A DNA stretch of 64,000 bases from Thalia democratica (Eukaryota). Position 1 is the first letter of the stretch. The number at the start of each line of letters is the position of its first letter. The position numbers and the translations under genes are program-made. The stretch lies in contig OZ241834.1 in assembly GCA_965202585.1 (NCBI GenBank), positions 9,858,001 to 9,922,000 on the forward strand, given 5' to 3'. Below the pieces are notes generated by a model that did no database searches, was not told the origin of the DNA, and saw nothing but the letters and a program-made list of their open reading frames with translations. This document shows, in pieces, positions 1-64,000 of this stretch.

Positions 1-1979
1 TAGTCGAACCTTTTTAACTTTACTGAGAAACTCATAAAACTCGTTTAAACTTGATGTGTGTTTAATTTGAGCATTGTTATAAAACTCATAAAAAAACAAA
101 TAAAAAAATATTTATTAAACTAAAAATTAAAAGCGGTAATACATAGTAGTTTCTAGGCTATTTAATTAAAATTTGAAAAAGTTTTGAAGAGAGTAGATAC
201 AAACAACTAAATTAAATAGTAGGAACATTTTCTTATGGAACTTAAATGACTGTACGAGTAAACTTTAACTAAAACCGTTAATAAAAGTGCCTTGTTTTGA
301 TAAGCTCATTGGGAAATTAAAATTAGTTGTCTAGTGTTTGGTTTTTCCTTTTGAAAAGTTGTTTAGCTTTAACGCGGTTATTATATCACAGGTTCAATTG
401 AGGTTAGGAATTGCTGGTCTTAATTTTATTTATTGAAAAAAAATCTGTCGCAAAGCCACAATTTAAATTTCGTTGATTTCGTAACCTTATTTATATACTT
501 CAAGATTGGGAAAAATTAAAAAACATTTTAAAGTTGTTTGTATTTTAATACTTTCACAAAAAAGTTTTAGTTGCATTTGTTCATTGTTTAAAATAGTAAT
601 TTTACAATGTATACTTTAAAAAGTATTAAACATTTTTCTCAAGCTTTTAAACTTTAAATCTCATCACAAAAGTTTCAGTAATTAAGTCTAATTTCATCAA
701 GTTTTTAATAATACAGATTTTGCTTTAAACATACAAAAAGTACGCTGTTAATATAAAGTTTTCTTAAATTTTTGTTCTTGTAAATATATTTAAATAAGTT
801 TTCAAATAGTGTTTACCTGTTAGTTTATTAAGGCATGAAACTTATTTGTTATAAACGATTACAACCTGTAGCAATATAATTCAAAATATATGATGTATTC
901 TTTTTCATGCTCTCTAGTGCGTGTAAATCTTTTATTAAAAAAAACCTGTGTTTTCTTTCTAATATAGTAAAAAAAAACTTTAATACCAAAGCAGTTTAGA
1001 CTCAACAGTTTTTTTATCATATAACTCTATATTTATTACAGAACTTTACGTCATGTTTTTGTTGTTTTTGAAAAATACCTTAATTAGCATAGAAATATGT
1101 TCTAAACTTTTGTATAAACCGTATACTCGACTTAATTCATTTCTAAGTTAAATAAAGTTTATAAACTCAGACTGTAAAGATATAAAGTATGCAACTTTCG
1201 CATTATTTTGCTTAAAATTTACTTAAGTGTTAAAACTTTAGAAAATTCTAAAATTTTAATTCTTGATTAATTGATACAAAAAGCCTTGTTATCTCAAAAT
1301 GTTTCTACAACAAAAAACTTTTGTCTTAAACAATCGAACAGTTCTATTTAAAAGTTATATTTGTTTTAAACTACATGGAACAACTGTTTAAGAACAAAAA
1401 GAAATTAAAACGTTTGTTGAAAAGAAATTGAAACTTAAAAAAATATTTTGTTAAAATTTATTACTTAAATATAAGATTTGAAAAAAAAAGAAAAATATAT
1501 GTATAAGTTACAATAAATATTAAAAAACGATGCTAAATGTCATGCTGCTTCAAGTAATTTACTCATATTTTAAATGTAAAAATATACATGCAACCATACA
1601 AAATAACTTTAATAAAACTAGCTTGTTGCAAACTATTTTGTGTATATAATACATATATAGCTTGCAGCAGTATATTACACAAGTTATTTTTATTTACTTT
1701 GTAAAGTAGACTATAAATTCAACATAAAAAAAAGACTATAAAAAATTAGTTCTTGAAAGTATTACTTATTTTGCTGCAAATAATTAAGTTAGTATTACAT
1801 TTAAAGTCTGCATGTATTTCTGAGTATTTTTGTTTGAAAAGTTTTAACCACTAAAAACAATTACTGCGTCTTATATAACTAAAACCGACAAAACTAGTTT
1901 TACGTCACAAAAATTTTAAACATACTTTTAACAATGTTGCAATATTTTATTCAATATTATTTAAATGTTTTTCTTTATT

Positions 1980-3800
1980 GTTTTTTTTTTTCACGGCAGC
2001 TTCACTGCACGCGTGGGAACAAAAACAAGAGTCTTAAAAACGCCTTACAACGCATATTTTCATTCACTGTTTATTCAAAGTCCCGTTGCTTTGTTCACAT
2101 CTTGTGTAAACTGGCAAACAAAAAGGCGACTGACAAAAGCAGAGGTGTCGCGGAAGCACTACACAAATCGCTTGAACTCTCTGGTGCTGGGATAAAAGGT
2201 GGAATTTTGTGGACTAACAATAACACACACTGCTTATTTGTCAACTGGTGTGCCTCACAGCTAGTCGTTGGGCAAACATTTGAACCCGAGAGTTTTTGTA
2301 ATAAGTTTGTTTTTCTGCGCTAACTTATTAATGTTTAGAAAACGCACTAAGTTCTGAAGATGAGAGGAAAAAGGGGGTTGTGAACAAGAAGCGATGTTAG
2401 ACGTTTGTTTTTGTAAACACATACAAACTATTAAAGGTACCATATTTCAAAAAAAAAGTTTAAAAAAACTTTAATTGATTGATTTAAAAAATTAGCCAAT
2501 TCAATTCAATTATTTAGTTTTAAAATGTTAAATCAAATTACAAACAAGTATTTCTTATGTTCACTGAAATAATGAAAATAATTGAGGAAGAAAACTTCGT
2601 ATAAGCAGCGGGAAGAAGAGAAGTCAATGCAATTAAGCGAATATAAGCAAATAAAAAGTGGCAGGGTCACATTTCCCACAGAGACAAAAATGACCATGTT
2701 ATTAACGTCTCGGACTCTGGAGTGATTGACGTTTTTAAATTGGGTTTCGTTTCGCTTTAAATTAGAAGATAGATGTGAACAGTTGAGATTGTTGAAGTGT
2801 GCCGTGTGACAAACTTGTTTATGTTATACTGCAATATTTTACTTCTAATTATTTCTCTGAATATATTGTGGAAAACAAATGGTACGAACAGTATATAATT
2901 ATTAAATAATTAAAAAAAAAATTATCAAATTTTTTTATGATAAAACTCCTTTACGAGCTAGTTAGTAGCCAACTAATCAAAATATTTCTTTCCATTCGAT
3001 TTTAAAGTTAGAACAACCAAATCCGGTTACAATTTGTCAAATAAAACAAATCCTATTGTCTTCGTGAAAGCTAAACTAAACAAAATAAACTATCCAACAA
3101 AAAGCTCTACGTAATTTCGCAATTGCATCATAATAGAACATTTGGTAAAGTTTCTTACGCATGTTATTAATTTTGACATTAGGCTAAACGATATGAGTAT
3201 TGGAATTATGAATACTTCCTTGCACCTGCCAATACTTCTTTTTGTTTTGTGAATGTCCTTTTGTTATCAAAATTGTAGTTAAAATAACATTAAGGGCACA
3301 TGATAACATTTAAATATGTACAACTACCAATTCTTTTTAAAATTTTTTTCCAAAATTTCAAGTTTGTTAAAAATGATTAAATTATTTCAGTTAGCTCTAG
3401 AATAGTTTTTTACCTTTAAATTAGAAACGTATTTTCAAAGTTTGTGTTTTTACAGCTAAATAAAGAGTTATATATAAAGTGTACTTTATTTATATCAGGT
3501 AGAAATTAAAAAAAAATTGTTAAAACTTCAGAAAAAAAAAAACAGTTTAAAGCCAGCATAATACGTAGCAAGTGCACAGACAGCTTCTAAGTAGCCAACT
3601 TGAACGACTCAAGTCGTGACAAAATTGTGTATCAACAAAAGTTCCAATCAGTGAACTTTCCCTTCGTTAGCATGAATTCACAGCACGAATCTGAATATTG
3701 AATGAACTTGATACAAGTTGAATATACGCTCTGTATGTTTTAATACTTATTGCGTTTGCATAACGACTTTTGCAAAAGCATGATTTGCTGTTAGTTGACT
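1980..3800. other. Four conserved islands (~1980-2410, 2590-2860, 2950-3300, 3545-3800) at the distal end of the unit
   Basis: Collinear with 45390-43570 in copy B. The reading frames tested are not shared between copies. Confidence 0.5.
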
Positions 3801-4449
3801 TGCATGCTTTATTTCGTTTGCTTCTTAAAACAAATATTTATAAATATTCCTTGTTGCATGATTTATATTATGTTTGTTCTATGAAAGTTTAATGCATTAT
3901 TTTTCGAAAACATCCCTAGAAAATTGTTGATAATTTATAAAAAAAAAGTTGTTGTTAACAAAATTAAATACTACGAATTATTAAAATATACGTTAGTGAT
4001 TTATATGATTTTGTTATACTAATATCAAGAATGAACTTTTAGTATAGAAGGTGTGAAGTTGAACTTAAGTAATAAAAGTTATTCAATTATAAATTCTTCA
4101 TAACTGTGATCTTTTACCAAAAAACTACTAATTAACTTTAGCTTAAGTATATTAAAGTTTATCACGCAAAGAGTTAATTTCATAAATTTTGAAATTTTTA
4201 AATCGATATTAAAGTTATTTGTTAAATCAGAAATAATTTCATTTTGACTTTATCTATAAGTCTGCAGAATTATTAGTTACTTATTTTTAATATGAATTTA
4301 GCAAATATAAATTAGAAAGAAGATAGTAATTTTATTATCTAAGTTAAGCTTGAAGTTGTACAACTTTTTGTGATTGTTAGTTTCTAATTATAGCAAGCAT
4401 GACTCCTTCTTAGATATTTTAACTCTTATTTTTAATTTTATCGTTTTTT

Positions 4450-4680
4450 TTTTGGCTAAGCCTGACGTCACCGATAATCAAGACTAACTATCGCTTCTCA
4501 GGCGCCAATAAAAACAACTTTCTGTTTTCCTACAAACAAAAAAATCTTTTGTCTTTTTCAAACAGCCTTATAGGTAAATACTTGAAGCTTGCTAGAATAA
4601 GCTTACTTTTTATTACTTCCCATTTATTAAAAGTTAATGGTCTTTACTTAGTGTGGGTCGGAGATAAGTCTTGTTTGTTC
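4450..4680 (+). promoter_or_regulatory. Conserved island with CRE (TGACGTCA 4463-4470), an E2F-like TTGGCGC on the minus strand and a donor AG|GTAAAT at 4574
   Basis: All three motifs are retained in copy B (CRE at 42875-42882). Confidence 0.5.
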
Positions 4681-6099
4681 AACCAATTAAAACATTTTTG
4701 TTAAACTTATTTTTAAAATTTTTATCAAGTAAACAACGATGATATATTAGTTGAAAATAAAATTAAACAAACTAAAAATTGGTATTGAAGAAACAAGATA
4801 ATTCTTTTTTTAATTTAAGGCTGCTATATTTTCAACTTATTAAACTATTTATTTTTTGTTTTAACATATTATATTTTGAACTTTGTTTTTTACCCAAAAT
4901 TTTTGATACTTGAAAAAAAATACGAGACTTGCCAAAAATTTGTTTATAACTAAAGATGAAATTGTTTACTATAAGAACTTATTGTTTTTATAAAAACAAA
5001 AACTACTTGAAGCACTTTAACTCTTCTTTAATCATGCTAATTATAAACTATGAAATAAATATGCTGTTTAGTAGTTAAATAAAAGCTATTAAAAAAAATT
5101 GAAAAAAAAAGTGTTTCTTTGTTGTGAAAGTAATAAGTAACAATGACCATAATTTAAGCAAGCTTTTTAAAAAACTAATATCATAAATAAACTATTAATA
5201 TCTACTAATAGTAAAAATTAAAAATATTGTACAATCAATACACATTTAAGATTTCAAAACATCTTCTAACTTATTGATAACATAAAGATAGCTCAAAAGT
5301 TTCTTTTTTTTAAGTTAAAGAAGTTTAAACTTTTTTAATTAAGAAATAAAAAATTAAACCTAATCACAATTACCTTTTAAAAAAGCTTTAAAAACTCAAT
5401 TTTTTTTCGTTCTTACAGGAGTAATTACAAGTAATTGATTTACAAAACTTTCAACAAAGAAATTTTTCAATGTTTGCAGCAGAATAAAATTAAAGCGTAA
5501 ACTAAAACTATGTTATTTTGAAAAAGTTACGAAGTATGTCAAATATTTAAACGAATAGTTTATTTAAAAGACATTTAAGTAAAAAAACAAATAACTAAAC
5601 CAACTTACAATAGGTCGTTTTATAGCTTAAAAATAATTATACAAGCAACAAATAGTAAGTATTTTCTTTTGATAATAGTATATTTTTACCAAAAGCTACA
5701 ACTAAATAAAAAATCAATGGTTAAATATGAACTTACAAACATTATAAAACCAATTGACGGTATAAAAATTTGCTCTAAAAGTAATGTTTACTTTAAATTT
5801 AAAATATTTTATTAAATTTATAACTTATACAGGATTAGTATAAATTACCTCAAATATTTTTACTTTTTTTTTAAATAAGTGCTTTAAATATTTAAAAAAA
5901 AAAAAAAAAATAATGCTAAGTATAAAGAAATATTACTTTTGGTAATTAAAATTCACCACTATCTGTGATTTACCCTAAATTTTGTAAATCTTTTTTTTTT
6001 TTCATAACGATCCATACGACAAGTTTTCAATTAGTTTCTAATCTTGTCATAAAGTTGTTTTGAGTGGTTTTAATTTTCGTACAAGTGTAAATCTATATT

Positions 6100-6660
6100 A
6101 TAGTTTAAAACCTTACTCTCCCAAGATTAAGAGAAACAAGACAGCAAATACCTCAAAATTCCCGATAATTAACATTGAATTTTGAGATGAGTGACATTGA
6201 TTGTTGCCACTTGAGCGCTAATTAACAAAAAGGAGCGACACAATCACGAGTTATCGAGTCTAGCGAGATTTTTAATTTCACTTCTTCCTCAAGTATTTGT
6301 TGCTTGTTATTGTAAGACGACGGCTGCTCGCCGGTTATTTGCCTTCAATTGACGCATTAATGACACTTAATACTGCTAAAAATACCGAAAAATTCCGGCG
6401 ATACAAAGATAATTGCAGTCCGAACTCCGTTCGCAGATTATCTTAATTACTCGCTCCTTCAAAGTGACCTTTTGAGAGGGTTGATTTTGCTGCACAAAAT
6501 ACACACAGTTTGCTGGGAGGTTAACTGGAGGTGTCAGTTGTGTCTGCATTTTGTATATAATACTTTTGTTACTGTAAGCTAATAAAAATAAACAAAGTGC
6601 AGCCGACTATTAACAGAGGTTATGATGGTTAAAAAAATATACTTTTTTTGGTCTGGTAGT
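6100..6660. other. Conserved island of unknown role (possible antisense small ORF, see findings)
   Basis: Conserved at 40680-41260 and 62110-62700. Confidence 0.5.
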
Positions 6661-7274
6661 TTTGTTTGCCATTGCATTTGAATTAAATATTTTTAAAGCA
6701 AAATTGTAAAGTATTATTTACTTATAAACAACCAAGTTAAATAGTTTGTACTTAAAAAAAATGCTTTTTCAATTTTTTTATTAATCAGACTGACAAACTA
6801 AGAAGTCAATTTTTCTGAAAACTTTTAAAACTCTTCTTTTAGTTTAATTAAAATTATTTTACAAGACTGAATTGTGTTGAGCTATTAGTCAAAGCTCAAA
6901 TTACTTTAAATAGTTAGTTACAGTATTATAAATTTCAATTTTCAGTTCACAATCCACATCTAAAGTAGAAACCTGTGCAAACCAGATTAACTCTGTGAAC
7001 TTTTTTTTTCATCTAGTAAAATAAATTTATTGTATCTTTTGTTTGTTAAACCGAATTTGAAGAAATATTTATAGATGTCAAAATTTGTGACTTTTACTTG
7101 TGATATTACATTAAATATTATAATTATGAAAATCAGTAACAGTATATTCACAAATTAAGAAACTCATGTATATTTTTATTTTCAGAAATATTTTCAAAGT
7201 TAGGAAGTAGCACAATATGTTTTAAACTATTTTAGTCTATTTATTTTTATAACTTTATGTAATATGCTTCGTAT

Positions 7275-7870
7275 TTTAAGCACGATTTATTAAACGTGAT
7301 TGGTTATAAGCGTGCTTAAATAAAATATATTTTTTATAACGTAAAGTTACTAACAGGTTAAGGCTTACTAAGAATTTGGAAAATGTTTGCAATAAACACA
7401 CAATCTTGTTAAAAGCTTATCTGACTAGTAGTTTCAAGGGTTTTGTCAACAAAAAAAAACGTTAAAATAATGATATGTTATCTACACAGGCAGCAAAAGC
7501 ACGAGCACACAATAAGTATCGATAGAAAAGTAGGCTGAAACAGCTATTTACTGAAAACCACCGTTGTTCTGGCGGCGGCAAGATAATGCGATATGACGTC
7601 ATAATAGCACCAGCAGTAGTATCACTCTCTCTTTTTGCGTCGTTGAAACCGGTGGAGCGGAAAAGACTGAAACGCGTTTTTCGTTTCTCTTTAGTCGGTG
7701 AGAAGCCTGAATTGAGATTAGTTCATTGGCAATTCACTCTGGTGACAGTCAAGTGAAAATCACAATGTGAAACAATTAACTTGAACTTAGCAAACTTTTT
7801 TGTTGTTACTAACACTCGGCAATTGCCTCTTTTTTAAGTCGGCTCAAAATTGTTTTGTTTCTTAAATTAA
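7275..7870 (+). promoter_or_regulatory. Conserved GC-rich island with reverse CCAAT box (7299-7303), 12-bp palindromic CRE TATGACGTCATA (7592-7603) and donor CG|GTGAGA at 7698
   Basis: Conserved in B (CRE 39749-39756) and C (61180-61187). Confidence 0.55.
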
Positions 7871-8919
7871 GCTGAAAATTTCACTTTTGATACAGAAAAA
7901 GTCTTTTGTTTATAAAAGTCCTAAGAGCAGATTGTTTGTACTTGAGATTTAAAAAGAAAAGACAATAAAAAACAAGAAAAAAAAGTAATGGTTGCAGATA
8001 TTTAAATGATAGTAAAAAAATGGTGGAGAATCTACCAATAAAAAAAGTTAATCATATTTTTTTACGAAAGTTAATGGTACAAGTAAATTTTTATCTAAAT
8101 GAGAGTATAAAAAACAGTTCAAAGGTTTTGTATTAACTTATACGACACATTTTACTCATCGAAACTTTTCGAAAAGTATGAGAAAATTGATTGTTTATCA
8201 TAGTGTTTATTTAAAAAATCTATGTTGTTTGTAAAAAGATAAATTTGCAGCAGTTATCTTTAAGATAAATATTTGTTTATCGTTTAAACCATAGAAAAAC
8301 ATGCTATTTTTGATAAAAAAAGTTTAAAAGTTTCAGACGTTTTTAATTTTAGTTTTTACTATTTTACACAGATAAGCATTTCTAAAAGTTAAGTTTATTC
8401 ATTTTAAGAAAAACTTTTTTGTTTATTTATAATTCAAGTAAAACAATTTTTAATCTGATTACTTAAATACCAGTAAGAAAATTTGAAATAAAAAAATTTA
8501 AAGTAATTTACTATGCAATGAATTAGTTTTTTTAATTAGTAAGTATATAAACCTTTGATTTTTACTTAACAGATTTTCTAAAACATAATAAAATATTTTG
8601 ATGGAGCTTTTTGTCATTATCTTAAATTGGTTATAACATTTAGAAAAAAAAAAATTAAGTATAGTATGTTTTTACTATAAAACTTATCAATTACTTTACA
8701 ATTAATAACACTTTATTGTATTCATAAGAACAAATTACAAAAAAAATAAGAAAAGTATTATGATATAATCTTTAAAAACTATTTTCTAGTTAAAACAGTA
8801 ACGAATATATTTTATAATAAACTGAACAAAAACAAACTTCAAAGTAAAATCTGAAGCTTGAAAAAGCAAAATATTGTTTGAAAAATAAGTTATAAGTTTT
8901 GAAGTGTTGTAACACTTTT

Positions 8920-9480
8920 CTATCTGAAACGTACAATGCTTTTTCCTTGTTCAACACAAAAAACGCTTCATGATTTTCGGTGCTCGAACTTTAACCGAGA
9001 TCTCGAACTTGATTGAGAATTGCTACTTTCTCGCAAATTAATCAGCTGATAACCGGCCTGCAGCGAAACCTGTTTGTGAGATAAGCAAAAAGTGTGTTGA
9101 TGAAACAACTCAACTGGCACTGAGCAGTTACTTTCTTGTTTACCTGTTTAACTGCTTTTGCCGGACTCGAGTCTCACAGTGAAACTAAATCGGCAGCATG
9201 AACTTTCGCACGGCTGTTTTGAAAGTGTAGAATCAGCAGTTAAAATGAGTAGTTAAACGAGCGAAGAGCAGTAAAAACTGCACAGTAATTTCACCGGATG
9301 CTTTTTGAAGTGTTGAAGTTCAAAACTACTCATTTTTGAAAATGAAGCAGGTCGTAATATCATTGGTTTCGGAAGTAGTTCTGTTTTTAATGTTTTACGC
9401 AAACCCAGCAGAAACTTTAAAAGGCAAAAGAGAAAAGATATTTTAACCAAAACTGTGTTTTTTAGTTTATTTTCCAATCT
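8920..9480. promoter_or_regulatory. Conserved non-coding island (several CAGTTA/TAACTG, CAGCTG, GACTCGAGTC palindrome)
   Basis: Highly similar at 37860-38440 and 59280-59870. Indels of 5 and 7 bp between copies argue against coding. Confidence 0.45.
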
Positions 9481-10909
9481 CTTGAATACTTATTTAGTGC
9501 AGATTTAGTATTAGTGAGTGTATTCTATTAAATTTTTCAATCAAACTATCTAGGTATGACCAAAGAATTAAAGTAATAAATAATTAAACATACGTTATTA
9601 TAAGTTATGTAGTTTACCAGTTTTTTTTAGTATGTTTTTGTTAATTTGTAAGTTCTACTATTTTTTGATGTTCCTATATTAAATTAATAATTTTTAAATA
9701 AAAGAAAAGGATTTTGAAAATTTACTATGTATCTTGTTAGTTAAAAGAGTTGTTGTGTTGACATAAGTAAATATTTTTATGATATTTAGACAGCATCTGA
9801 AAATCAATACTTTGAAAAATTACACACAATTTAAAATAATTTTTTAATACGTTTAATTTTTCTTAATGAATTGAAACAACACATACTTATATAAAGCATA
9901 ATTTCAAATTGTTGATTTTTTATGATTATTTTCTAATTTTTTTGTATATTATTAACAAAAATCTAGTGCTGTTTTTATAGCCTTAGGTGTATTTAAGAAT
10001 GGCTGAATCAATTGTTAACAAGCTATAAAAAAGTACCATAAAAAAGTCACGTGAGTTAAAAAATATTGCTATAAAATAATGTGTATAAAAGATTTTGGTC
10101 GTTTTACGTACAAAAGTATACATTTATAGTCTAAGTTCAAGTAACTCACTTTTAAGTATTCATAAGACAGCTTATGAAGTATTTTTCAGTTAGTTTTTCA
10201 GTGTAAAACAACTGAAATATGTATGAAAAACTTTTTGATAAAAAATGCGTAATTAACATTATGACTTCTGCAATGCAGTGGTTTGGTTTATCATGACAAA
10301 ATTTCAAGCTTTGTTTTGAGAGAAAAAAATCTATTATGTCTAAGTTTTTACAGCTGCATATGAATTAATTTAAAACATAAGTATTATTTAAAATTTTTAT
10401 GTATTTATTTATTCTGTATTTACTTTTACTTTTTACTTTAAAGTTATTGAATTACTTTAGAATTTTTTAGAAAAATTGTTAGTTTTTATATTTACAATAA
10501 ATAAGCTAAGCAAATATTGCCGTGAACAAATGATCAAAGAAAAACTGATTTAAGTACAGAACTAGTTTTTGAAACACATCAATAATATTTTTTGACAACT
10601 GTTACAAGCTACTACAAATACAATCTAAATATTTTTGTTTGCATCATTGATAAGTTTTTCATGTAGTTTATTTGAAATTTTTTTGTTCAAGTTCAATTTT
10701 AAAATGTTTTAAATTGTTTGTTAAAAATAAAAAAATAATATAATTTTGTAAAAAAAGCGTAAAAGAAGTTAAACTTTTGTAAAAAATCAAGTTTTAATTT
10801 AGAAACAGTATATTTAAATATACTACAATGAAAACAAATAAAGTGTTTAAAACAAGTTTTAAAAGAAGAAATGTACTGTATTTTTAAACTAATTGAAAAT
10901 TACTGTTCA

Positions 10910-11190
10910 ACGCGGTAACAAAAAAAACTTCTAGTAACAACAAGTTGCAAGGAAATAAGCGATAATGTCAGTGAACGGCTCAGTGTGGTGTCACAATCAA
11001 ATTGCTACTCGATTGTTGACTCGCCCGGCCCCCACCTGCCGCCGACGACAAAAATGGATGCATTATGACGTCACAACGGCAGCTGGACGATGCGACTCTT
11101 TCTGATGCTTGGCCGCTGAAACGGGTTTTTAATAATTCATAAGAAAATCAGTGCACTGTTGAGTCTTTTATGAACACAAGTGATACAGTT
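10910..11190 (+). promoter_or_regulatory. Conserved GC-rich island with CRE (11066-11073) and a weak donor at 11180
   Basis: Conserved in B (CRE 36282-36289) and C (57710-57717). It is the most CpG-dense stretch of the unit by eye. Confidence 0.55.
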
Positions 11191-11712
11191 GGTTTAACTT
11201 GCTAGTATTTTTGTTTAGCAAGTATCAAAAGGATTAAACTGAAGTTGTGGTTAAAACATTTTATTGCATTCAGTTTAAAATATTTCAAATTCACCATACA
11301 TACAATTTGATTAAAGTTAGAGAATGTGTGTTTTATGATTTCAAGTCTAACACATATGGTACAAGTTTTCTTGATTTTTAATAAAGGACAAACAGTGACA
11401 AATATACGTTGCATTAAAACAGAAATATTTTGTGGATTTCGCACTAAAATAGTTTAGTAGATTTAGGACAGCTGATATTTGAACTTGTTTTTTAAATACA
11501 TGAACTCACATCTTAGCATAGTTTTGTGTAAATTTTGTTTTTAAAGCTTAAAAGTAGTTTTGTTTGAAAATATATTACAACTATTTAAATTTATTTTAAG
11601 CAATAATTGTCTTTAAACCATGTTGAAACTTAGACTGCATGACTTAATCCTTGAAAAAAAAAAGTTAAGTAATTTTTCATACATTTTCAGTGATATTGAT
11701 ATATAGTTTTAT

Positions 11713-12070
11713 AGATAGAATTAACTATAATCTCGGATAAAAATTTAAATTTATTATTATTTATTTTGAACAGATAAACACCACAATAAAATTTATTTGT
11801 CTTGAAAAAAATAACTCTTGAAATCTACAAAACTTTTCTAAATTATTTAATTATATACTTGATGGAACAGCTTTTTAATAAATTTGTGTTAAAAACTATT
11901 TATTTCTTTAAAAGTTGTTCCATCGGGTATATAACTTAATAATTTAGAAAGGTTTTGTAGATTTCGTGAGTTATTTTTCAAGACAAATAAATTTTATTGT
12001 GGTGTTTATCTGTTCAAAATAAATAATAATAAATCTAAATTTTTATTCTAGGTTTTAGTTAATTCTATCT
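11713..12070. repeat. Foldback / long inverted repeat (arms ~165 bp, loop ~30 bp), copy A only
   Basis: 11713-11876 is the reverse complement of 11909-12070, including a perfect core atttattattatttattttgaacagataaacaccacaataaaatttatttgtcttgaaaaa. Confidence 0.9.
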
Positions 12071-21885: not shown

Positions 21886-21929
21886 TTTTAATTTGTTTTC
21901 TTTTTTTATTTACTTTTAATTTTTTGTGT

Positions 21930-53000: not shown

Positions 53001-56000
53001 TGAACCTCGAGTTTTGCTGGCTTTTGATTGGACGTTCTTCTGTTTCGTGAAAAACGTCTTCACTTTCCGATTCGCTCTCCACCTGCTTCTTGATGTTTGT
53101 CTCCACATCTTCATACACCTTCACTCCCATCTTCGGCTTCATCTCGTCGATTTTCCGCTGTTCGCAGTTCATTTTCCCGCTGAAGTCGGAATATTTCATG
53201 TCTTCTTCCTCCGTGGTTTTGTCTTCCGACGGTTTCCCTTCAGTTTTTTGATTTTTTTCTGCTGGTTTAGTGGAAAGTAGGAGTGAGAGGAAAGTAGCCA
53301 GTTTTGTGAAAAGCTGTTCGATTAGCGGGTCTGGCATACCTACAATAAATCAAAAAAAATGTTATGTTATGTTTTTTTTCTTATAATTGTAGTGGGGTAG
53401 TATAAATGGTTAACATTTTTTAAGCAGAATCATGTATTTCATGTTAAAACATTTAGTTTAATGTTTTAAAGGTAGAAGATATGTAAAAAAAAATTCGAAT
53501 TATTTTTAAGTAGCTATAGCGTTTACGTAATACTTTGCTAATTACAATTTAAAATCATTTATGATAAGTATCAAATTTTGACTACCGAAGTAATTTAACA
53601 CTTTTAAATGTCAAAATTGCATAAAATATTTAGTTCTAAAGTTACCTTGTTCTCTTATTACAACGTCTTTTAATTTTTTGCGCCTTAAGATGGAAACTAG
53701 GGTGAAAAAAATGACATAACGAGTGAGGAATTCCACACAAAAAGGATATATTGAAAGTCGAGAAATGAAAATTACCTTAAGTGCAAGGTAAAGTTGGATA
53801 TTCGTTACGTGCGATTATTTAGTATCTGAAACTGAAAAAGTAGAAGAAAAGATAAACTTTTGGTGATTTGCTTCATGCGTGTTTTTCTTGCGAGTTGGAT
53901 CAAAAGCGAGGCTATTTGCCAGGAAAATGCTTTTAACCTTGTCGGCACGTCTTTTGAATCCTATACAGCAGCTTGCTTTGTTTGAACAAAACAGAAAAAC
54001 TCCTGTGTGACGCTTGTATCTCGTGTACATATCAACCTTTTTGTTCGGTTTCGACATTCGGAAATTTTCAAATATAATAACCTGTTTGTTCAGCAAGTTG
54101 TTTCCAGTTCGCCGAAGTTTCGCTTCTTTTAACTTCCTTGTTTTCTTGATTAAGCTCACTCGAAAATTTTATTCTTCCTTTTTTAGTGAAAACTTTATTT
54201 AATGTTAAACATACAATTGTTTAATTAGACAGCTTTTAGGTTTTATTTAACTGTTAATTTTTATTTTAATAATAAATATAATTATATGTTTAATAAATTA
54301 TAAAGTTTTTGACCCATATTTCTAAAAACATATTATTTGATTTTTTTTTTTTACGTGACTAACTTTAGTAACTTAATAAAATAAACTTAATTTTTGGTAC
54401 TAAAGCTCACATGATGTTATTGTACAAATTATGTAGATAGTTACAATAATTAAAGTATAATATGTTTGATAAAAATTTCTAACTTTTTGTGTTTAGTTTG
54501 TTTTCGTTGGTAAGTTCTTCCACTTGGTTTCTCAACATATCACATTCATCAAATAGTTCATCCCTTTCTTTTTCAACAAGCATCTTTTCTGTTTCTACCT
54601 AAATTACATTGGAATTTATATTCATAATACTCCTTTATTTTACAATTAAATAGTGTTTTAATCCTTCAAAAAAATATTTATAATCATATACGTATACATG
54701 TTTAAAGAGTTCTTTCTAAAGCATTTCAACTATTCGTAAATGAAACATTGAAATGAGTTTAATCGCCCTAATGTCAAGTTAATATTAAAATTACGTTTCT
54801 ATTTGATTATTTACATCATAATTTTAGTAATACAACCCGTTTAACTGCAATTAAGAAAAAAACATTTGTTTCAAACGCCTCCCCCTGACAATATATTAAT
54901 TTAATATAATTATTTTGTACAAATGATTTTGTGTGTACTAAGTTATCGCCTTTTATATCAACCAAATGAGTTTAATCTTGTTAATGAGTTTTTTATATTT
55001 TAACTATGTTTGATGTTTTGTTTATGTTTATTTGGTGTTGAATATAAATGTTTTTATTTTCATTATTCTCGTTCTTGTGTCTTGATTAAGTGGCTCAGGT
55101 TTTGATGCCTGAGTCTAACTTTGCACAATAAAGAATATAATAATAATAAAAACAAGTTGGTTTGATGATGTTTAAGCCACTTTTCGATTTATTGTAACAA
55201 CTCAGCGTTTTATACTATATTAAGTATAAAACTAGAGAATTTGTTTAAAAAACATCTAAACATTTTAGTCTTGTTTCTTGTTGATCAAAAGTTCGCTAAC
55301 ATACTTTAAAAATTAATAAAAACTGTTATAAATGTATTGATATTACTTACTTTTTCGTTTTTAACATTCAGGTTTTCAACGAGCTTGACCAGATTTTTGT
55401 TTTCATCTTCAACTCGCTGAATCTTTTCAACTAAACGAGCGTAACTGGAGTGTACCATGTCCGCATTCTGATAAAAACAACAATTCAGTAAAAACTCCTT
55501 TTGTTAAAGCATTTTAAAGTCTATCTAAATAGACAAACGTTGAATTTTTTCAAAAATTTAAAACAAGTTATTAGTGCTTTACTTATTTTAGCTTTATAAT
55601 AACTTCTTATAAATGTAAAATTAGTTTTAGGCTTTGAACTTGCTATGTTTGACTATTTTTTGTTAAATTACCTAATTAAGCAGTTTACATATTTTAAAAA
55701 CACGTTGTTTTGGTTTTGATAAATTACACTGAAATTTATATTATGAATAATTTTGTTGTCAGCTATAATATTCAACAAATTAGAACTTGCTGTTAAGATT
55801 CAACAACTTTTTTCTATTTAAATGAGCTTTATTTCAAAATATTTATTAAAACAAAATTCAAAAAGCATTTGAAAATTGCTATAGACGTTCCTAATTGTAT
55901 ATAGCCTGAGCTAATGACAAATTCAAAAATATAAGGTTTTTTATTTAATGTTCACACGTTACAGATAACTACCGTCTCACAAGACTCAAAACAACAAATT

Positions 56001-56198
56001 ACAAGCATATAATAAGCGGGCAGATTACTACTCTTCTCAAAATTGCAGTGCAACTTGACACTGGCAATTATACCTTAAAGATTCTCATTGCCACCCACAA
56101 AATGAACAAAAACTCACGCTCCTTGAAGTTCTCGAGGAAGTAGATTCGCTATAAAGTGAATTGATGCCATACCGACTCTGCGATGATTTCGAAGTCAT
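47098..56198 (-). CDS. Copy C of the same 16-exon gene (ORF intact if three shifted acceptors are used)
   Basis: Exons 5'->3': 56198-56118, 55467-55351, 54598-54484, 54192-54082, 53339-52959, 52215-52059, 51852-51788, 51148-50997, 50707-50635, 50009-49872, 49563-49338, 48875-48688, 48472-48290, 48136-47875, 47721-47464, 47227-47098. The A-type AG is missing at exons 4, 6 and 15, but an in-frame AG lies 6, 15 and 3 nt downstream. Confidence 0.78.
51371..51478 (-). CDS. Candidate exon 7b, copy C
   Basis: 108 nt, AG..GTaatt, open reading frame. Confidence 0.6.
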
Positions 56199-59100
56199 AA
56201 CAGACTATTTGCTTGTTTGCTTTGTTTTGTTGTTTTATTGTTAATACCTGTGAAAAGAAAAAATAAATTTGTCTAAGTCACCAGATTAATTATTCAATAT
56301 TTGCGTCACTCTTGTAATGCGTATGTGTATGGTTAAACCTTTTTATTTGTAAATAATGATTTTATATGTCTTTTGTAATGACGATGTACCATGTAAAAAC
56401 AAAATGTTTTAAATAAGTTTGGTTATTTTTTGTTTGTGTTGAGATAAACAACACGATGCATTTTAATTTTTAAAGAGTTTTTTGTTTACTTATACGAAAT
56501 CTAGTATAAAAACCATTGTTGCAGAAATATGTAAACGCAAATAAAGTTTATTAAACTCTTATTTTCTAAAACCACAAGCTAATCTTAAAAGTAAACTTTT
56601 TCTATTACTAAAACTTCTAAAAACTATTATAATAAGTCTATAAGTATTTTAAAAACTTGAAACTTTTTATTTTAAAGAGCTTACTTCAATCAAACTTAAA
56701 ACATTATTGGTTTATTGCTTTAAATTAAACATCAAACTTTATAGAAATCGTTTTCAATTATCCAATTAAATAATTTGTGTATATTACCAAACAGTATTAA
56801 GAATTCAATTTTTATTTCTCTAGTTTACCTAATTGTTGCAATACTTTAAAATTTAATATTATGTTTGACCTAATTTATAGTTTTAATTTATAGTTCATAA
56901 GTAAAATTTAAATAAAAGTTTAAATTTGTTGTGATTTATTTTGTTTAGACAAAAACCAACAAAAAAATTGTTTGCTTTAGAAACTAATTTGCGAAATCTA
57001 CAAAACCTTTCTAAACTATTTAGTTATATATCTGATATAGTTAATTTTTAATAAAAATGTATTAAAAAGTACTTTAACTTTATTTCAATGATAAACTCAT
57101 GCAGTCAAAGTTTAAAAAAAAATTAAAGACTATTAGTGCTTAAAATATACTTAAACAGTTGTTATATAATTTCAAACAAAATTAACTTTAAGCTTTCAAA
57201 GAAAAACTTACACAAAACTATGCTAAGATGTTTTTTTATGTATCCGATTTGTTTTTAAACAACTAATAGTTATATTAGTCCATCATTAAAAAAAGTTCAA
57301 ATTTCAACAGGTTTTACTTTTACTAAACTATTTTCAGTGCGAATTCTAAAAAAATATTTTTATATCTATGTAACGTATATCTGTTACTCATTTTTCCTTA
57401 ACCTAAAGTCAAAAAACTTATACTATTTGTGTTACATTTAAAAATTCTAAAATACACATTCTTTAACCTACTTCAAAGTTGTCTGTATGGTGAATTTGAA
57501 ATATTTTTAACTGATTAAAATAAAATATCTTAATCAAAACTTCAGTTTAATCCTTTTGATACTTGCTAGACAAAAATACCAGTAAGTTATACCAACTGTT
57601 TCACTTGAGATTATAAAAGACTCAACAGTTCACCTATTTCCTTATGAATTATTCAAAACCGTTTCAGCGGCCAAGCATCGGAAAGAGTTGCATCGTCCAG
57701 CTGCCGTTGTGACGTCATAATGCCTCCATTTTTGTCGTCGGCGGCAGGTGGGGGCCGGGCTAGTCAACAATCGAGTAGCAATTCGATTGTGACATCACAG
57801 TGAGCCGTTCACTGACATTATCGCTTATTTCCTTGCAACTTGTTGCTACTAGAAGTTTTTTTTTACCGCGTTGTACAGTAATTTTCAATTAGTATAAAAA
57901 TACAGTACATTTTTCTTTCCAAACTTGTTTTAAACACTTTTTTGTTTTATTGTAGTATATTTAAAAATACTGTTTCTAAATTAATACTAGATTTTCACAA
58001 AAGTCTAACTTCTTTTACGCTTTATTTTACAAAATTATATTAAATTTTTATTTTTAACAAACAATTTAAAACATTTTAAAATTGAACTTCTACAAAAAAT
58101 TTTAAATAAACTATCAATGATGCAAACGAAAATATTTAGATTGTATTTGTAGTAGAGCAACAATTTTGTAGTAGCTTGTAACAGTTGTCAAAAAATATGA
58201 TTGATGTGTTTTAAAAACTAGTTCTGTACTTAAATTAGTTTTTCTTTGATCTTTTGTTCACGGCAATATATGCTTAGCTTATTTAGAGTAAATACAAAAA
58301 CTAACAATTTTTCTAAAAAATTCTAAAGTAATTCAATAATTTTAAAATAAAAAGTAAATACAGAATAAATAAACACATAAAAATTGAAATAATAGTTATG
58401 GTTTTTATTAATTCATATGCAGCTGTAAAAACTTATACATAATAGATTTTTTTCTCTCAAAACAAAGCTTGAAATTTTGTCACGATAAACCAAACCACTA
58501 CATTGCAGAAGTCATGATGTTAATTACGCATTTTTTATCAAAAAGTTTTTCATACATATTTCTGTAGGTTTTACACTGAAAAACCAACTAAAAAATACTT
58601 CATACGCCGTCTTATGAATATTTAAAAGTGAATTACTTGAACTTAGACTATAAATGTATACTTTCGTGCGTAAAATGACCAACATCTTTTGTATACATTA
58701 TTTTATAGCTATATTTTTTAACTCACGTGACTTTTTTATGATATTTTTCTATAGCTTGTCAACAATTGATTCAGCCATTCTTAAATACACCTAAGGCTAT
58801 AAAACAGCACTAGATTTTTGTTAATAATATACAAAGAAATTAGAAAATAATCATAAAAAATCAACAATTTGAAATTATGCTTTATTTAAGTATGTGTTGT
58901 TTCAATTCATTAAGAAAAATTAAACGTACTAAAAAATTATTTTAAATTGTGTATTACTTTTTAAAGTATTGATTTTCAGATGCTGTCTAAATATCATAGA
59001 AATGTTTACTTATGTCATCACAACAACTCTTTTAACTAATAAGAAACATAGTAAGTTTTCAAAATCCTTTTCTTTTATTTAAAAATTATTAATTTAATAT

Positions 59101-62100
59101 ACAGCCATCAAAAAATAGTAGAACTTACAAATTAACAAAAACATACTAATAAAAAATTGGTAAACTACATAACTTATAATAACGTATGTTTAAACTATTA
59201 CTTTAATTCTTTGGTCATACCTAGATAGTTTGATTGAAAAATTTAATAGAATACACTCACTAATACTAAATCTGCACTAAATAAATATTCAAGAGATTGG
59301 AAAATAAACTAAAAAACACAGTTTTGGTTAAAATATCTTTTCTCTTTTGCCTTTTAAAGTTTCTGCTGGGTTTGCGTAAAACATTAAAAATAGAAGTACT
59401 TCCGAAACCAATTATATTACGACCGGCTTCATTTTCAAAAATGAGCAGTTTTGAACTTCAACACTTCAAAAATCATCCGGTGCTGTGAAATTACTGTGCA
59501 GTTTTTACTGCTCTTCGCTCGTTTAATATTCATTTTAACTGCTGACTCGACACTTTCATAACCGCCGTGCGAAAGTTCATGCTGCCGAATTAGTTTCACT
59601 GTGAGACTCGAGTCCGGCAAAAGCAGTTAAGCAGGTAAACAAGAAAGTAACTGCTCAGTGCTAGTTGAGTTGTTTCATCAACACACTGTTTGCTTATCTC
59701 ACAAACAGGTTTCGCTGCAGGCCGGTTATCAGCTGATTAATTTGCGAGAAAGTAGCAATTCTCAATCAAGTTTTAGATTTCGGTTAAAGTTCGAGCACCG
59801 AAAATCATGAAGCGTTGTTTGTGCTGAACAAGAAAAAAGCGTTGTACCTTTCAGATAGAAAAGTGTTACAATACTCCAAAACTTATAACTTCTTTTTCAA
59901 ACAATATTTATCTTTTTCAAGCTTCAGACTTTTATTTCTAAGTTTGTTTTTTATTCAAATTAATATAACAAAAATAAATTCATCATTTTTTTAATAACTA
60001 GAAAATATTTTTTTTGTTTAATAATATCTTGTTAATTTTTCTTTTCTTTTTATAACTTGTTATATAAATACAATAAAGTGTTTTTAATCGTAAATCAATT
60101 GAAAAGTTTTATAATAAAAAAACATACTACACTTTAGTTTTTTCCTAAATGTTATAACTAATTTAAGATAACGACAAAAAGCTCCATCTAAAACTTTTTA
60201 ATATATTTTATAAAATCTGTTAAGCATAAAACAAAGGTTTTGATACTTAGTAATTAAAAAACTAATTCATTGCATATTTAATCATTTTTAATAGCTTTTT
60301 TTTATTTTTTTTTACTTTTGTTCAAGTAATCAGATTAAAAAAATTTAATTTAAAGTTCAAAATTCAAAAAAAAGTTTTATTTAAAATGAATAAACTTAGT
60401 TTTTAGAAATGCTATCTGTATAAAATAGCAAAAAATCAAATCAAAACAGTCTGAAACTTTTAAGCTTTTTGTTTTTATCGAAAAGAGAATGTTTTTCTAC
60501 GTTCTAAGTTGAACAATTAACAAATATTTATTTAATAGATAATTGCCGCAAATTTATTTTTTACAAACAACACGGGTTTTTAAAGTAAACTCTATGATAA
60601 ACAATAAATTTTCTCATACATTTCGAAAAGTTTCTTTTAGTAAAACGTGTGGTATTAAGTTAATACAAAACCTTTGAACTGTTTTAAAAACTTTCATTTA
60701 AGTAAAAAAGTTACTTGTACCATTAATTATCGTAAAATGTATAATTAACTTTTTTTATTGGTAGATTATCCACTATTTTTCAACTATCACTAAAACATAT
60801 AAAACTATTACATTTTTTGTGTTTTTATTGTCTATTCTTTTCCAAACTCAAGTACAAACAAACTGCTCTTAGCACTAAACAAAAGACTTTTTCTGTATCA
60901 AGAGTGAAATCTTCAGCTTAATTTAAGAAACAAAACAGTTTTAAGCCGATTTAAAAAGAGGCAAATGCCGAGTATTAGTAACAACAAAAAAGTTTGCTAA
61001 GTTCAAGTTAATTGTTTCACATGGGGATTTTCACTTGACTGTCACCAGAGTAAATTGTCAATGAACTAATCTCAATTCAGGCTTCTCACCGACTAAAGAG
61101 AAACGAAAAACGCGTTTCAGTCTTTTCCGCTCCACCGGTTTCAACGACGCAAAACGAGAGAGTGATGCTTGTGCTATTATGACGTCATATGGCATTATCT
61201 CGCCGCCGCCAGAACAACGGTGGTTTTCAGTAAATAGCTGTTTCAGCCTACTTTTCTATCAATACTCAGTGTGTGCTCGTGCTTTTGCTGCTTGTATAGA
61301 TAACGTATCATTATTTTAAAGTTTTTTGTTGACAAAACCCTTGAAACTAGTAGTCTGATAAGCTTTTAACAAGATTGTGTGTTTATTGCAAACATTTTCC
61401 AAATTCTTAATAAGCCATAATCTGTTATTAATTTTACATTATAAAAAATATATTTTGTTTAAGTACGCTTATAACCAATCACGTTTTAAAGCTTGTGCTT
61501 AAATTACGAAACATGTTACATAAAATTATAAAAATAAATAGCCTAAAACAGTTTAAATCATGTTGAGCTACTTCCTAATTTATAAAAATAATTCTGTAAT
61601 TAAAAACTTACATGAGTTCCTTAATTTGTGTAACATACTATTATTGTTTTTCATAGTTATAATGTTTTATGTAATATCACAGGTAAAAGTCACATATTCT
61701 AATATTTATGAATATTTCTTCAATTTCGGTTTTAGCAAAAAAAAGATGGTAGTAAATTTGTTTAAATAGATGAAAAAGAATTGTTGCAATAAAAAAAAGT
61801 TCAAATAGTTAATCTGGCTTGCACAGGTTCCTACTTTAGAATTGGATTGTACACTGAAATTTATAATACTGTAATTAACTATTTAAAGTAATTTGAGCTT
61901 TGACTAATAGCTCAACACAATGGATTTGAAAATTCAGTCTTATGAAACAAGATTTAAAAAAAAATTCAAATTAAAAGTATATTTTCAGTTTGTCAGTCTA
62001 ATTAATAATAGATAAAAAAAAGTTTTCAAGTACAAGCTATTTGACTTGGCTATTTATAAGTAAATAATACTTCATAATTTTTCTACAACATTATTTTATT

Positions 62101-64000
62101 AAAATGCAAGGGCAAACAAAACTACCAGACCAAAAAATATTATATTTTTTCAACCACCAAGACTTCTTTCTGTTAATCGTCGGCTGCACTATGTTTGTTT
62201 TCATTAGCTCACAGTAACAAAAATACTATAAACAAAATGCAGACACAACTGACACCTGCAATTAACCTCCCAGCAAACTGTGTGTATTTTATGCAGCAAA
62301 ATCAACCCTCTCAAAAGGTCACTTTGAAGGAGCGAGTAATTAAGATAATCTGCGAACGGAAAACGGGCTGTAATTTTCTTTGTATCGCCGGAATTTTTCG
62401 GTATTTTTAGCAGTATTAAGTGTCATTAATGCGTCAATTGAAGGCAAATAACCGGAACGAGATGGGCTTCAACAACCGAGCAGCCGTCGCCTTACAATAA
62501 CAAGCAACGAATACTGGAGGAAGAAGAGAAATTGAAAATCTCGCTAGATTCGATAACTCGTGATTGTGTCGCTCCTTTTTGTTAATTAGCGCTAAAGTGG
62601 CAGCAATCAATGTCACTCATCTCAAACTGTGAATTATCGGGAGTTTTGAGGTATTTGCTGTCATGTTTTTCTTAATCCTAGGAGAGTAGGGTTTTAAACT
62701 ATTATATGAATTTACACTTGTATGAAAAGTAAAACCACTCAAAACAACTTTCTGACAAGATTAAAAACTAATTGAAAATTTGTCATATGGATGGTTATGA
62801 AAAAGTGAAAACTAAAAAGAAATTTACAAAAGTTTATAGTAAACCACAGATAGTTGCAATGAATAAACAACAAATTTTTTTTTTATATTTAGTTATATCA
62901 TATTCTATGTTAATATTTTAAAATTAGTTAAAACACTTATTTTGTAAGAAATTTAAAAAGTTCAAGGTAATTTATACTAATCTTCTACCTGTACAAATTA
63001 TTGATTTAATAAAAAATTTAAAATTTGAAAATAGAATATACTTTTAGAGCAAATTTTTATACCGTCAATTGTTTGTAAGATTGTATTTAACAATTGATTT
63101 TTTTATTTAGTTGTAGCTTTTAATAAAAAACTAATATCAAAAGAAAATACTTACTAGTTGTTAATTGTATAATCATTATAAGGCTATAAAACGATTTATT
63201 GTAAGTTTATCTAACTATTTGGTTTTTCTTACTTTAATGTTAATTAAATAAAGAGTCCGTTAAAAAAACTGAAATACTTCGTAAGTTTTTTTTAAAGTAA
63301 AATAGTCTTAGTTTACGCTTTGATTTTATTCTGCTGCAAACATTGAAAATTTTGCAAAACATTTACTTGTAATTACTCCTGTAAGAACGGAATTCAAATA
63401 CAATTTTCAAAATTCTATAAAAAGGTAATTTGTGACCAGGTTACAATTCAATTAAAAAAAAAGGTTAAGCTTCTTTTACTTTAAAAATAAGAAACTTTAG
63501 AGCTATCTTTATGCTATCAACAAGCTAGAAGATGTTTTAAAATCTTAAATGCCTTAAATTATTAATGTGTATTATTTGTAGAAAAGATTATCATTACTTT
63601 TTAATATTAGTAGATGTTAATGATTTATATCTGGTATAAGTTGCTTAAAAGCTTGTTAAGTTATAGTCATTTTTACGTATTATTTGCACAACAACCAAAT
63701 GTTTATTTTTTCAATTTAATTAGTAGCTCTAATTTAATTACTAAACAAAATTTTATTTCATAATCTATAATTAGCATAATTAAAGAAGAGTTAAAGTGCT
63801 TCAAGTAGATTTTGTTTTTATAAAAACAATAAGTTCTTATAGTAAACAATTTTAGCTGTACTTATAAACAAATTTTTGGCAAGTCTCATAACTTTTTTAA
63901 GTATCAACAATTTTGGGTAAAAAACAAAGTTCAAAATACAATATATTAAAACAAAAACTAAATAACTTAATCAATTGAAAATATAGCAGTCTTCAATTAA

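Follow-up and report, generated by a model that had tools for sequence, protein, structure and literature searches.

A probable old seven-member gene cluster with patchy gene conversion in Thalia democratica

Introduction

The window analysed here, a stretch of 64,000 nucleotides from the marine animal Thalia democratica, holds three long copies of a multi-exon gene, two of which face each other tail to tail. A sequence-only reading had described them as a triplicated cassette of ~21 kb and a selectively maintained amplified locus, by analogy with mammalian Y-chromosome amplicons. Arms of Y-chromosome palindromes are more than 99.9% identical and are homogenised arm-to-arm. The locus raises the question of whether it is a palindrome of this kind or a gene family of another sort, and whether its copies are real, intact and under selection.

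Results

The window contains three units of a seven-unit cluster

Self-BLAST of the window recovered three collinear copies, A on the plus strand and B and C on the minus strand (72–88% identity over as much as 17 kb per alignment, well above what chance would give), which is the layout originally proposed. Copies A and B are arranged tail-to-tail with a spacer, and B and C head-to-tail with an 85-bp junction (Table 1). Similarity between the inverted arms of A and B stops at 22090 and 25461, and the centre between the arms contains no ORF of at least 90 aa. Rfam and tRNA scans of the whole window gave no match.

The apparent triplication proved to be an effect of the window's edges. The gene is present as seven units in a single cluster of ~177 kb (C10:9829239-10006314) on one 40-Mb contig, and a genome search found no gene copies outside this cluster. 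Copies A, B and C are units U2, U3 and U4 of the array; U1, the neighbour of copy A, lies outside the window. Two of the seven units are on the plus strand and five, arranged head-to-tail, on the minus strand, with both groups converging on the A/B junction, and the sequences that flank the array on its two sides are homologous to each other in inverted orientation. Each unit comprises ~11 kb of non-coding upstream DNA and one gene of 16–17 exons encoding ~889 aa. BLAST of the ~2.9-kb inter-unit "spacers" showed that these are also homologous between units (86–88% identity), and the repeat unit is therefore ~24.4 kb rather than ~21 kb. By the same homology, the first 1731 positions of the window are part of the ancestral unit. 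Some units carry unit-specific insertions, and a Pfam search with two ORFs from such insertions, in U1 and U6, gave no match. The cassettes are genuine old copies within this larger cluster.

Table 1. Features of the window, with positions counted from its first letter.
Feature	Position	Strand	Remarks
Last part of ~2.9-kb inter-unit segment U1/A	1..1731	.	homologous to segments U4/U5, U5/U6 and U6/U7, 86-88% identity
Copy A (U2)	1732..23232	+	self-BLAST
Upstream region of A, non-coding	1732..12577	+	conserved islands, without codon periodicity
CRE palindrome TGACGTCA	4463..4470	.	~8.2 kb upstream of ATG; kept in 5/7 units
CRE palindrome	7594..7601	.	~5 kb upstream of ATG, in 91-97% conserved island; exact in 6/7 units
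CRE palindrome	11066..11073	.	~1.5 kb upstream of ATG; exact in 7/7 units
Coding region of A	12647..21885	+	17 exons, 889 aa, all splice sites canonical; 5' end (exons 1-2) uncertain
A exons 1-5	12647-12699, 12757-12814, 13357-13473, 13930-14044, 14363-14458	+	
A exons 6-10	15268-15645, 16409-16580, 16976-17040, 17755-17906, 18204-18276	+	
A exons 11-14	18899-19036, 19327-19555, 20017-20204, 20418-20600	+	
A exons 15-17	20756-21017, 21195-21455, 21756-21885	+	
3' UTR and 3' tail of A	21886..23232	+	common to C and units outside window; B retains part up to 22090 only
AT-rich centre between convergent arms	23233..25458	.	unique, 21% GC
Copy B (U3)	25459..45631	-	self-BLAST
Coding region of B	25672..34753	-	17 exons, 889 aa, frame open, all splice sites canonical
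C/B head-to-tail junction, 85 bp	45632..45716	.	~2.9-kb inter-unit segment deleted here
Copy C (U4)	45717..64000	-	cut by window end; upstream continues ~3.3 kb further
Coding region of C	47098..56170	-	frame open, 889 aa projected; two canonical acceptors lost
Lost acceptor, C exon 7	52231..52232	-	TA for AG; next AG 15 nt downstream, in frame
Lost acceptor, C exon 16	47725..47726	-	AC for AG; next AG 3 nt downstream, in frame

Gene model, intactness and transcription

The gene model was built by comparison between the copies and refined with RNA joints. A single exon chain is compatible with both these joints and an open frame, giving 17 exons and 889 aa. Exon 2 has weak support, and leaving it out reduces the count to 16, with ATG 12619 joined directly to exon 3 as a candidate alternative to a start at ATG 12647. 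The 16-exon gene proposed from the sequence is real, with a count that depends on exon 2. An earlier 18-exon dynamic-programming (DP) model was rejected, as RNA joints changed five of its boundaries. A frameshift in exon 12 of copy C, which derived from that model, was discarded as well: the RNA joints put the acceptor at 19327, and the 1-bp deletion is intronic.

Exon lengths and phases are conserved among A, B and C, all indels are in frame (B has two, +3 in exon 6 and -3 in exon 12), and there are no stops, all as first described. The further statement that all three ORFs are intact holds fully for A and B; the frame of C is open, but its exons 7 and 16 lack canonical acceptors. Across the cluster, six of the seven copies have an open frame over about 2.66 kb, and the length of every indel is divisible by three. 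Outside the window, the frame of U7 is interrupted by a premature stop at codon 694. The exon 2 donor is lost in U1, and U5 carries a 27-bp deletion.

Transcription was assessed over exons 7–17 from contigs of two metatranscriptome runs on wild plankton samples. These contigs lie on exons only (depth 76–1237 in exon bins versus 0–8 in intron bins), and 11 junctions are supported by GT..AG joints or loose ends. The contigs are 90–99% like copy A, and they differ from it mostly at sites where A alone departs from the other copies, so that they are not assigned to individual paralogs. The family is transcribed and correctly spliced, a result that applies to the family and not to each reference paralog.

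Coding sequence is under purifying selection

Pairwise dN/dS was 0.22–0.38 in all 21 pairs, well away from 1, with dS of 0.11–0.19, and it was also low in pairs without recent conversion. Exons were 2–3 times less diverged than introns (0.05–0.085 versus 0.084–0.22), in line with the clearly diverged introns noted in the sequence-only reading, and 6–40% of intron columns were in indels between copies. Codon periodicity was observed in the larger exons and was absent from introns and upstream islands. In windowed analysis, dN/dS was 0.1–0.6 nearly everywhere, and we found no signal of positive selection or of an arms race. Purifying selection acts on nearly all of the coding sequence. The gene has the marks of a functional protein-coding gene rather than of a pseudogene or chance ORF: its transcripts are spliced, its dN/dS lies under 1, and its exons are better conserved than its introns.

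The upstream DNA carries conserved CRE sites

The window contains eight exact CREs versus 0.3 expected, at positions conserved across units, and the upstream DNA of each unit has three conserved CRE sites. An inverted repeat was not found in the neighbourhood of any of the CREs. We found no sign of another gene within the 11 kb of upstream DNA, where windows of synonymous excess, conserved long ORFs and codon periodicity were all absent, and no copies of the upstream 10 kb elsewhere in the genome. Judging from the sequence, the upstream region of A is likely to contain promoters together with 5' non-coding exons that would be joined to a conserved acceptor near 12577.

Units exchange DNA in patches

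The nearest-neighbour unit changes along the unit, with different pairs reaching 95–99% identity in different segments. Trees of four segments contained mutually incompatible clades at 100/100 support: the upstream segment gave (U3,U6)+(U4,U7), the 5' end of the gene (U3,U4)+(U2,U5), and the 3' half of the gene (U4,U6). Such conflict at full support indicates that the units exchange DNA. High-identity tracts also occur between opposite-strand copies (U2~U5, 93–96%; U2~U4, 95–98%). The nearest neighbour of A is B in one 1-kb window only, at 92%.

A protein with no recognised family

Sequence features suggest an N-terminal, heptad-like coiled coil at residues ~40–140, followed by an acidic disordered middle (pI 5.2) and a basic Ser/Pro-rich tail (pI 10.1), with 12 S/T-P sites as well as RxxS motifs. 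In the AlphaFold model of exon 6 (mean pLDDT 59), a single helix (pLDDT about 80) precedes a disordered stretch.

Homology searches were run exon by exon, a design that is weak for distant relatives. Ten exon ORFs gave nothing in Pfam at E < 0.001 or the family cut-off (best E 0.0086), an Atlas search with exons 6 and 12 gave no usable match, and PDB sequence searches with three exons gave no match. Searched against 1.84 billion representatives, a HMMER profile of exon 6 matched two near-identical metagenome genomic fragments; P0001 is encoded on a metagenome node of 1.4 kb, which offers no context. Another match of this profile, P0003, was dismissed as spurious, being a Glu/Ser-rich repeat protein. 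A word-based search with exon 16 returned two fragments, ~90% identical. The description of the gene as an unrecognised orphan is consistent with these searches, in which the only relatives are near-identical metagenome fragments, and by such sequence comparison no occurrence of the gene appears to be known outside this marine animal and its nearest relatives.

As to function, it is possible, and we offer it tentatively from composition and motifs, that the N-terminal coiled coil dimerises, that the protein is a mostly disordered phospho-regulated scaffold whose basic tail would be a binding site for an acidic polymer or partner, and that it is expressed from CRE-type promoters. Candidate tail partners in such a scheme are microtubules, nucleic acid or 14-3-3, and the putative phospho-regulation is suggested by the S/T-P sites and RxxS motifs. 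PSRC1/DDA3 and NCKAP5 are microtubule-associated scaffold proteins with a coiled coil and a Ser/Pro-rich disordered region. Scaffolds of this type share with the protein a short N-terminal coiled coil and a long low-complexity basic S/T-P-rich region, but no sequence similarity was detected; the resemblance is one of architecture and not of membership.

Discussion

We consider it probable that the window holds units 2–4 of an old seven-member tandem and inverted gene-family cluster of ~177 kb that has undergone patchy gene conversion. A tandem array is recognised by at least three adjacent paralogous units with gene and flanks, and seven are present here; the mosaic identity and incongruent segment trees are those of concerted evolution. 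The ancestral unit of ~24.4 kb would have comprised ~11 kb of CRE-bearing non-coding upstream DNA, the 16–17-exon gene and the 3' tail. An inverted duplication would then have produced two convergent arms, which would explain why the outer flanks are inverted homologs, although gene conversion blurs the segment trees as to the order of this step and the tandem array. Unequal crossing-over could subsequently have enlarged the arms to two plus-strand and five minus-strand units. The dS values suggest that these duplications are old. Later, tracts of a few kb would have been swapped by non-allelic gene conversion or unequal crossover, leaving the mosaic. Some members look as though they are beginning to decay, with a stop in U7 and lost splice sites in C and U1.

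Many animal multigene families evolve by birth and death together with non-allelic gene conversion. The cluster resembles tandem clusters under partial concerted evolution, as found in many animal families, in its head-to-tail paralogs, mosaic similarity and strongly conflicting trees, and in the purifying selection on its coding parts while a few members decay. It differs from them in that the gene has no known family, the units form two convergent arms with inverted outer flanks, and duplication and conservation extend over all ~11 kb of upstream DNA.

The analogy with mammalian Y amplicons would make the locus a palindrome whose copies are kept near-interchangeable for dosage of a germline or conflict gene. 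Several open frames with low dN/dS speak for it, as do conversion tracts that in some cases join opposite-strand copies and the conserved CRE sites; some germ-cell genes typically have promoters driven by CREs. The human Y palindromes P1-P8 (DAZ, CDY, RBMY) likewise combine an inverted arrangement and a short unique spacer, here the centre between A and B, with a multi-copy gene with open frames and some conversion between copies in opposite orientation. However, amplicons of this kind have near-identical inverted arms (> 99%), whereas the A/B arms are 72–85% identical and among the most diverged pairs, which sets the cluster apart from Y-chromosome palindromes. Arm identity here is 72–88% rather than > 99.9%, and conversion is patchy and mostly between other unit pairs. 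Such amplicons are further marked by sex linkage and germline (testis)-restricted expression; the transcripts of the present family come from mixed plankton. The missing signal of positive selection in windowed dN/dS also counts against the analogy, and with a stop in one copy and lost splice sites in two, copy number is not strictly protected. We regard this reading as unlikely; of the proposed selective maintenance, purifying selection is supported and maintenance of the Y-amplicon type is not. We are equally doubtful of a variant in which the cluster is a lineage-specific amplicon in the form of a diverged palindrome, its seven CRE-driven copies together providing one cell type, such as gametes, with a new phospho-regulated coiled-coil protein at high dosage, and conversion rescuing copies from decay. 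If true, it would be an invertebrate autosomal counterpart to sex-chromosome amplicons.

Decay could also have gone much further than we suppose, leaving one or a few functional copies among young pseudogenes, with low dN/dS a product of past constraint and conversion. The U7 stop, the two canonical acceptors missing from C, the lost U1 donor, the U5 deletion and RNA contigs not assignable to individual reference paralogs would all fit. Yet six of the seven frames have stayed open over their full length despite dS of 0.11–0.19, with indels only in multiples of three, both lost acceptors of C have in-frame AGs nearby, and dN/dS is low in every pair, including those without recent conversion; such advanced decay seems improbable to us. 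Uncollapsed haplotypes or a falsely duplicated region are hardly credible as the source of the units. The contigs from the DNA runs carry no copy-number information, but haplotypic duplication leaves at most two near-identical copies, whose junctions show gaps or contig ends, and here there are seven copies, more than two haplotypes can provide, whose introns differ by 8–22% with abundant indels and unit-specific insertions, in 264 kb of sequence without a single N. Divergence and copy number together exclude such an artefact, bearing out the earlier expectation that at least one duplication is real. Contigs of DNA runs X1 and X3 moreover match stretches of A with 0 differences, one of them an intron at 16778–17009 that is poorly conserved among the copies. 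It is just as implausible that the unit is a mobile element, or the cargo of one, multiplied locally. The long repeated unit and the private insertions with ORFs in some units might suggest this, but the gene and its upstream 10 kb have no copy outside the cluster, the shared unit contains no transposase- or RT-like ORF, and contiguous collinear copies are what unequal crossing-over predicts.

The preferred reading, an old tandem and inverted cluster with patchy conversion, replaces the initial picture of a special triplicated palindrome. Its biology is ordinary for a gene family, and would become more interesting only if expression were germline-specific or the role of the protein new. The analysis provides an RNA-supported curated model for a gene that homology-based annotation would miss, and the locus offers a clean and well-resolved case of a taxonomically restricted gene that was multiplied through inverted and tandem duplication and then evolved by patchy conversion under purifying selection.

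The gene copies belong to a seven-unit array

Self-BLAST of the window, which is AT-rich (27% GC) and has no N, recovered three collinear copies of the gene cassette in alignments of up to 17 kb at 72–88% identity. Copies A and B lie tail-to-tail, with inverted similarity stopping at 22090 and 25461, and copies B and C lie head-to-tail, 85 bp apart; the layout described in the sequence-only reading is therefore correct. That reading's triplication holds for the window but was bounded by it, as a DNA search of the 801-Mb assembly followed by comparison with the 200 kb flanks identified seven units, U1 to U7, on contig OZ241834.1 (C10). Protein searches of the genome with exons 6 and 16 of the orphan gene carried by each unit returned exactly these seven places and no copies elsewhere.

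Most units are separated by 'spacers' of ~2.9 kb that are homologous to one another (86–88% identity), so the ancestral unit measured ~24.4 kb. The B/C junction has lost this inter-unit segment, and between A and B its place is taken by an AT-rich centre of 2.2 kb that is unique. The sequences flanking U1 and U7 on their outer sides are inverted homologs over 4–6 kb. Taken as a whole, the cluster is therefore an old, large palindrome that has diverged and whose two arms expanded in tandem to two and five units.

An assembly artefact is excluded because of copy number and divergence, in agreement with the earlier argument that misassembled alleles could not explain all copies and that at least one duplication should be real. 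The 264 kb examined are free of N runs, and DNA-run contigs matched the copy A intron at 16778–17009, a stretch poorly conserved among copies, with 0 differences. This match came from DNA run X1 ('organism A'), and run X3 ('organism B') likewise matched copy A with 0 differences at 17929–18156; the two labels probably denote one species or very close ones.

Several other features were observed in and beside the array. The U5/U6 and U6/U7 inter-unit segments carry an extra ~2.3 kb containing a degenerate minisatellite; read in long ORFs of either strand, it gives 'GHFCT/SLLHE' repeats. Private intron insertions in U6 and U1, whose ORFs had no Pfam match, are probably mobile-element remnants. 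Directly past the array, a further pair of genes is inverted, with nearly identical ORF fragments (KVIYAGFPKTGTK...) that resemble a sulfotransferase-type family, and beyond it come a NEK-like kinase exon and LTR-retrotransposon pol.

Features of the array and its surroundings (C10, contig positions; otherwise window positions)
Feature	Position	Strand	Remarks
Copy A (U2)	1732-23232	+	self-BLAST
Copy B (U3)	25459-45631	-	self-BLAST
Copy C (U4)	45717 to window end	-	self-BLAST; cut at window end
U1, U2	within C10:9829239-10006314	+	genome search, flank comparison
U3 to U7	within C10:9829239-10006314	-	genome search, flank comparison
Gene, copy A	12647-21885		17 exons, 889 aa; comparative model with RNA joints
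CRE palindromes, copy A	4463-4470, 7594-7601, 11066-11073		matching sites in B and C
Proposed exon '7b'	17421-17525		in frame
Extra ~2.3 kb, U5/U6	C10:9949359-9951855		L019-L020
Extra ~2.3 kb, U6/U7	C10:9978754-9981083		L022-L023
Intron insertion, U6	C10:9962785-9963924		L021:785-1924; 380-aa ORF
Intron insertion, U1	C10:9848112-9848771		L016; ORFs 110-145 aa
Inverted pair, first gene	C10:10013014-10017946	-	L026-L028
Inverted pair, second gene	C10:10027263-10030265	+	L026-L028

Transcripts refine the gene model

The exon chain was built as a comparative model from the seven-way alignment and refined with contigs of two marine metatranscriptome runs, examined together with two DNA runs over 15900–21899. 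RNA contigs were confined almost wholly to predicted exons (depth 76–1237 in exon bins versus 0–8 in intron bins), and the DNA runs covered the region evenly throughout. RNA joints and loose ends yielded 11 junctions, with splices joining exons 7 through 17; they shifted five boundaries of the first comparative model and, once applied, left only one chain whose frame is open and whose splice sites are canonical GT..AG. An additional hidden exon, '7b', also in frame, was considered and rejected as unused in the transcripts seen, given near-zero metatranscriptome depth (0 at 17300–17499, 0.23 at 17500–17699) and a direct RNA joint, 17038 to 17753, that bypasses it.

Exons 1–6 lie upstream of the region compared with RNA and are predicted from conservation, and the 5' end of the model is uncertain. 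All seven copies are open from ATG 12619 and from ATG 12647; the former has a poor sequence context and would join directly to exon 3 in frame, and the latter has good context and requires exon 2. Given a conserved polypyrimidine-CAG acceptor at ~12577, the two open ATGs and weak constraint on exon 2, a 16-exon version starting at ATG 12619 is therefore as possible as the 17-exon one, and may be what the sequence-only reading counted when it described 16 exons.

Most copies are open and the protein is constrained

We projected the gene model onto all seven units. A and B have open frames and canonical splice sites throughout. C also has an open frame, but direct sequence checks confirmed that two of its AG acceptors are gone, exon 7 having TA and exon 16 AC instead, so that the earlier description of three intact copies applies fully to A and B. 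The next AGs are in frame, 15 nt (exon 7) and 3 nt (exon 16) downstream, so C may still be productively spliced. Elsewhere, in U7 a stop ends the frame prematurely at codon 694, in U1 the doubtful exon 2 has lost its donor, and U5 has an in-frame 27-bp deletion. As had been noted for the window, coding indels are in frame: in every copy, all are multiples of three.

Across all 21 pairs (Nei-Gojobori), dN was 0.036–0.063 and dS 0.11–0.19, giving dN/dS of 0.22–0.38, not near 1 in the comparison that the earlier reading had proposed. Divergence was 0.05–0.085 in exons versus 0.084–0.22 in introns, where indels occupy 6–40% of columns. Substitutions in the larger exons were concentrated at one codon position (p down to 8e-7), a periodicity absent from introns and upstream islands. 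In 40-codon windows pN/pS was 0.1–0.6 almost everywhere, and the single window above 1 had very low pS. Purifying selection therefore acts on the whole length of the protein, with no arms-race signature among paralogs in these windows.

Conserved CRE sites upstream

The ~11-kb upstream region showed no coding signal and no Rfam or tRNA match, and a genome-wide search found no copy of the upstream 10 kb outside the cluster. It contains islands 90–97% conserved among units. Inside these non-coding islands, roughly 1.5, 5 and 8.2 kb upstream of the ATG, lie exact CRE palindromes (TGACGTCA), the proximal site being exact in 7/7 units, the middle in 6/7 and the distal in 5/7; the window holds eight, versus 0.3 expected by chance. 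The two proximal islands are alike, with a CRE, then ~45 nt, then a GTTGAAACCGGT-like box, and no inverted repeats were found near the CRE sites. The islands may be alternative promoters with non-coding first exons, which would be consistent with their conservation.

A protein of apparently restricted distribution

No significant Pfam family was found for ten exon ORFs, and neither two exon searches of the Atlas nor three of PDB sequences gave a match. An exon 6 profile searched against 1.84 billion representative proteins returned two near-identical metagenome exon fragments, one spurious repeat protein and nothing more; exon 16 returned two fragments ~90% identical. On these matches, and within the reach of searches made exon by exon, the gene occurs only in this animal and its close relatives. 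The protein has a heptad-rich segment (residues ~40–140), a conserved amphipathic helix where exon 6 begins (pLDDT about 80 in the model) followed by disorder, an acidic middle (pI 5.2), a block of invariant motifs near residues 475–510, and a basic tail (pI 10.1) with 12 S/T-P sites and RxxS motifs. Our best guess from these features is a protein that dimerises through a coiled coil, its long arms being disordered and regulated by phosphorylation, with a basic tail that would bind an acidic partner.

Copies exchange sequence

Identity along the unit is a mosaic. Within the window, identity between B and C rises to 95% over the gene's 5' half, and that between A and C to 95–98% at 19.7–21 kb. 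Among the seven units the nearest neighbour switches between segments: U3 pairs with U6 (99%) and U4 with U7 (98%) in the upstream region, U3 with U4 (96%) at 9.5 to 14 kb, U2 with U5 (93–96%) at 10.5 to 13 kb, and U4 with U6 (96%) over the gene's 3' half. When four segments were analysed by maximum likelihood, their trees contradicted one another on clades that all had 100/100 support, a conflict characteristic of non-allelic gene conversion or unequal crossing-over.

Exchange tracts include pairs of opposite orientation, and A and B, the inverted neighbours, are among the least similar pairs. The locus shares an inverted layout and short spacer with sex-chromosome palindromes, but it lacks their defining near-identical arms, homogenised arm-to-arm, and the reading as an amplicon of a germline or conflict gene is not supported. 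In its behaviour the locus matches classical gene families in tandem array: evolution is partly concerted, and birth-and-death is incipient. The gene family is new and uncharacterised, and its genomic arrangement is of a familiar kind.
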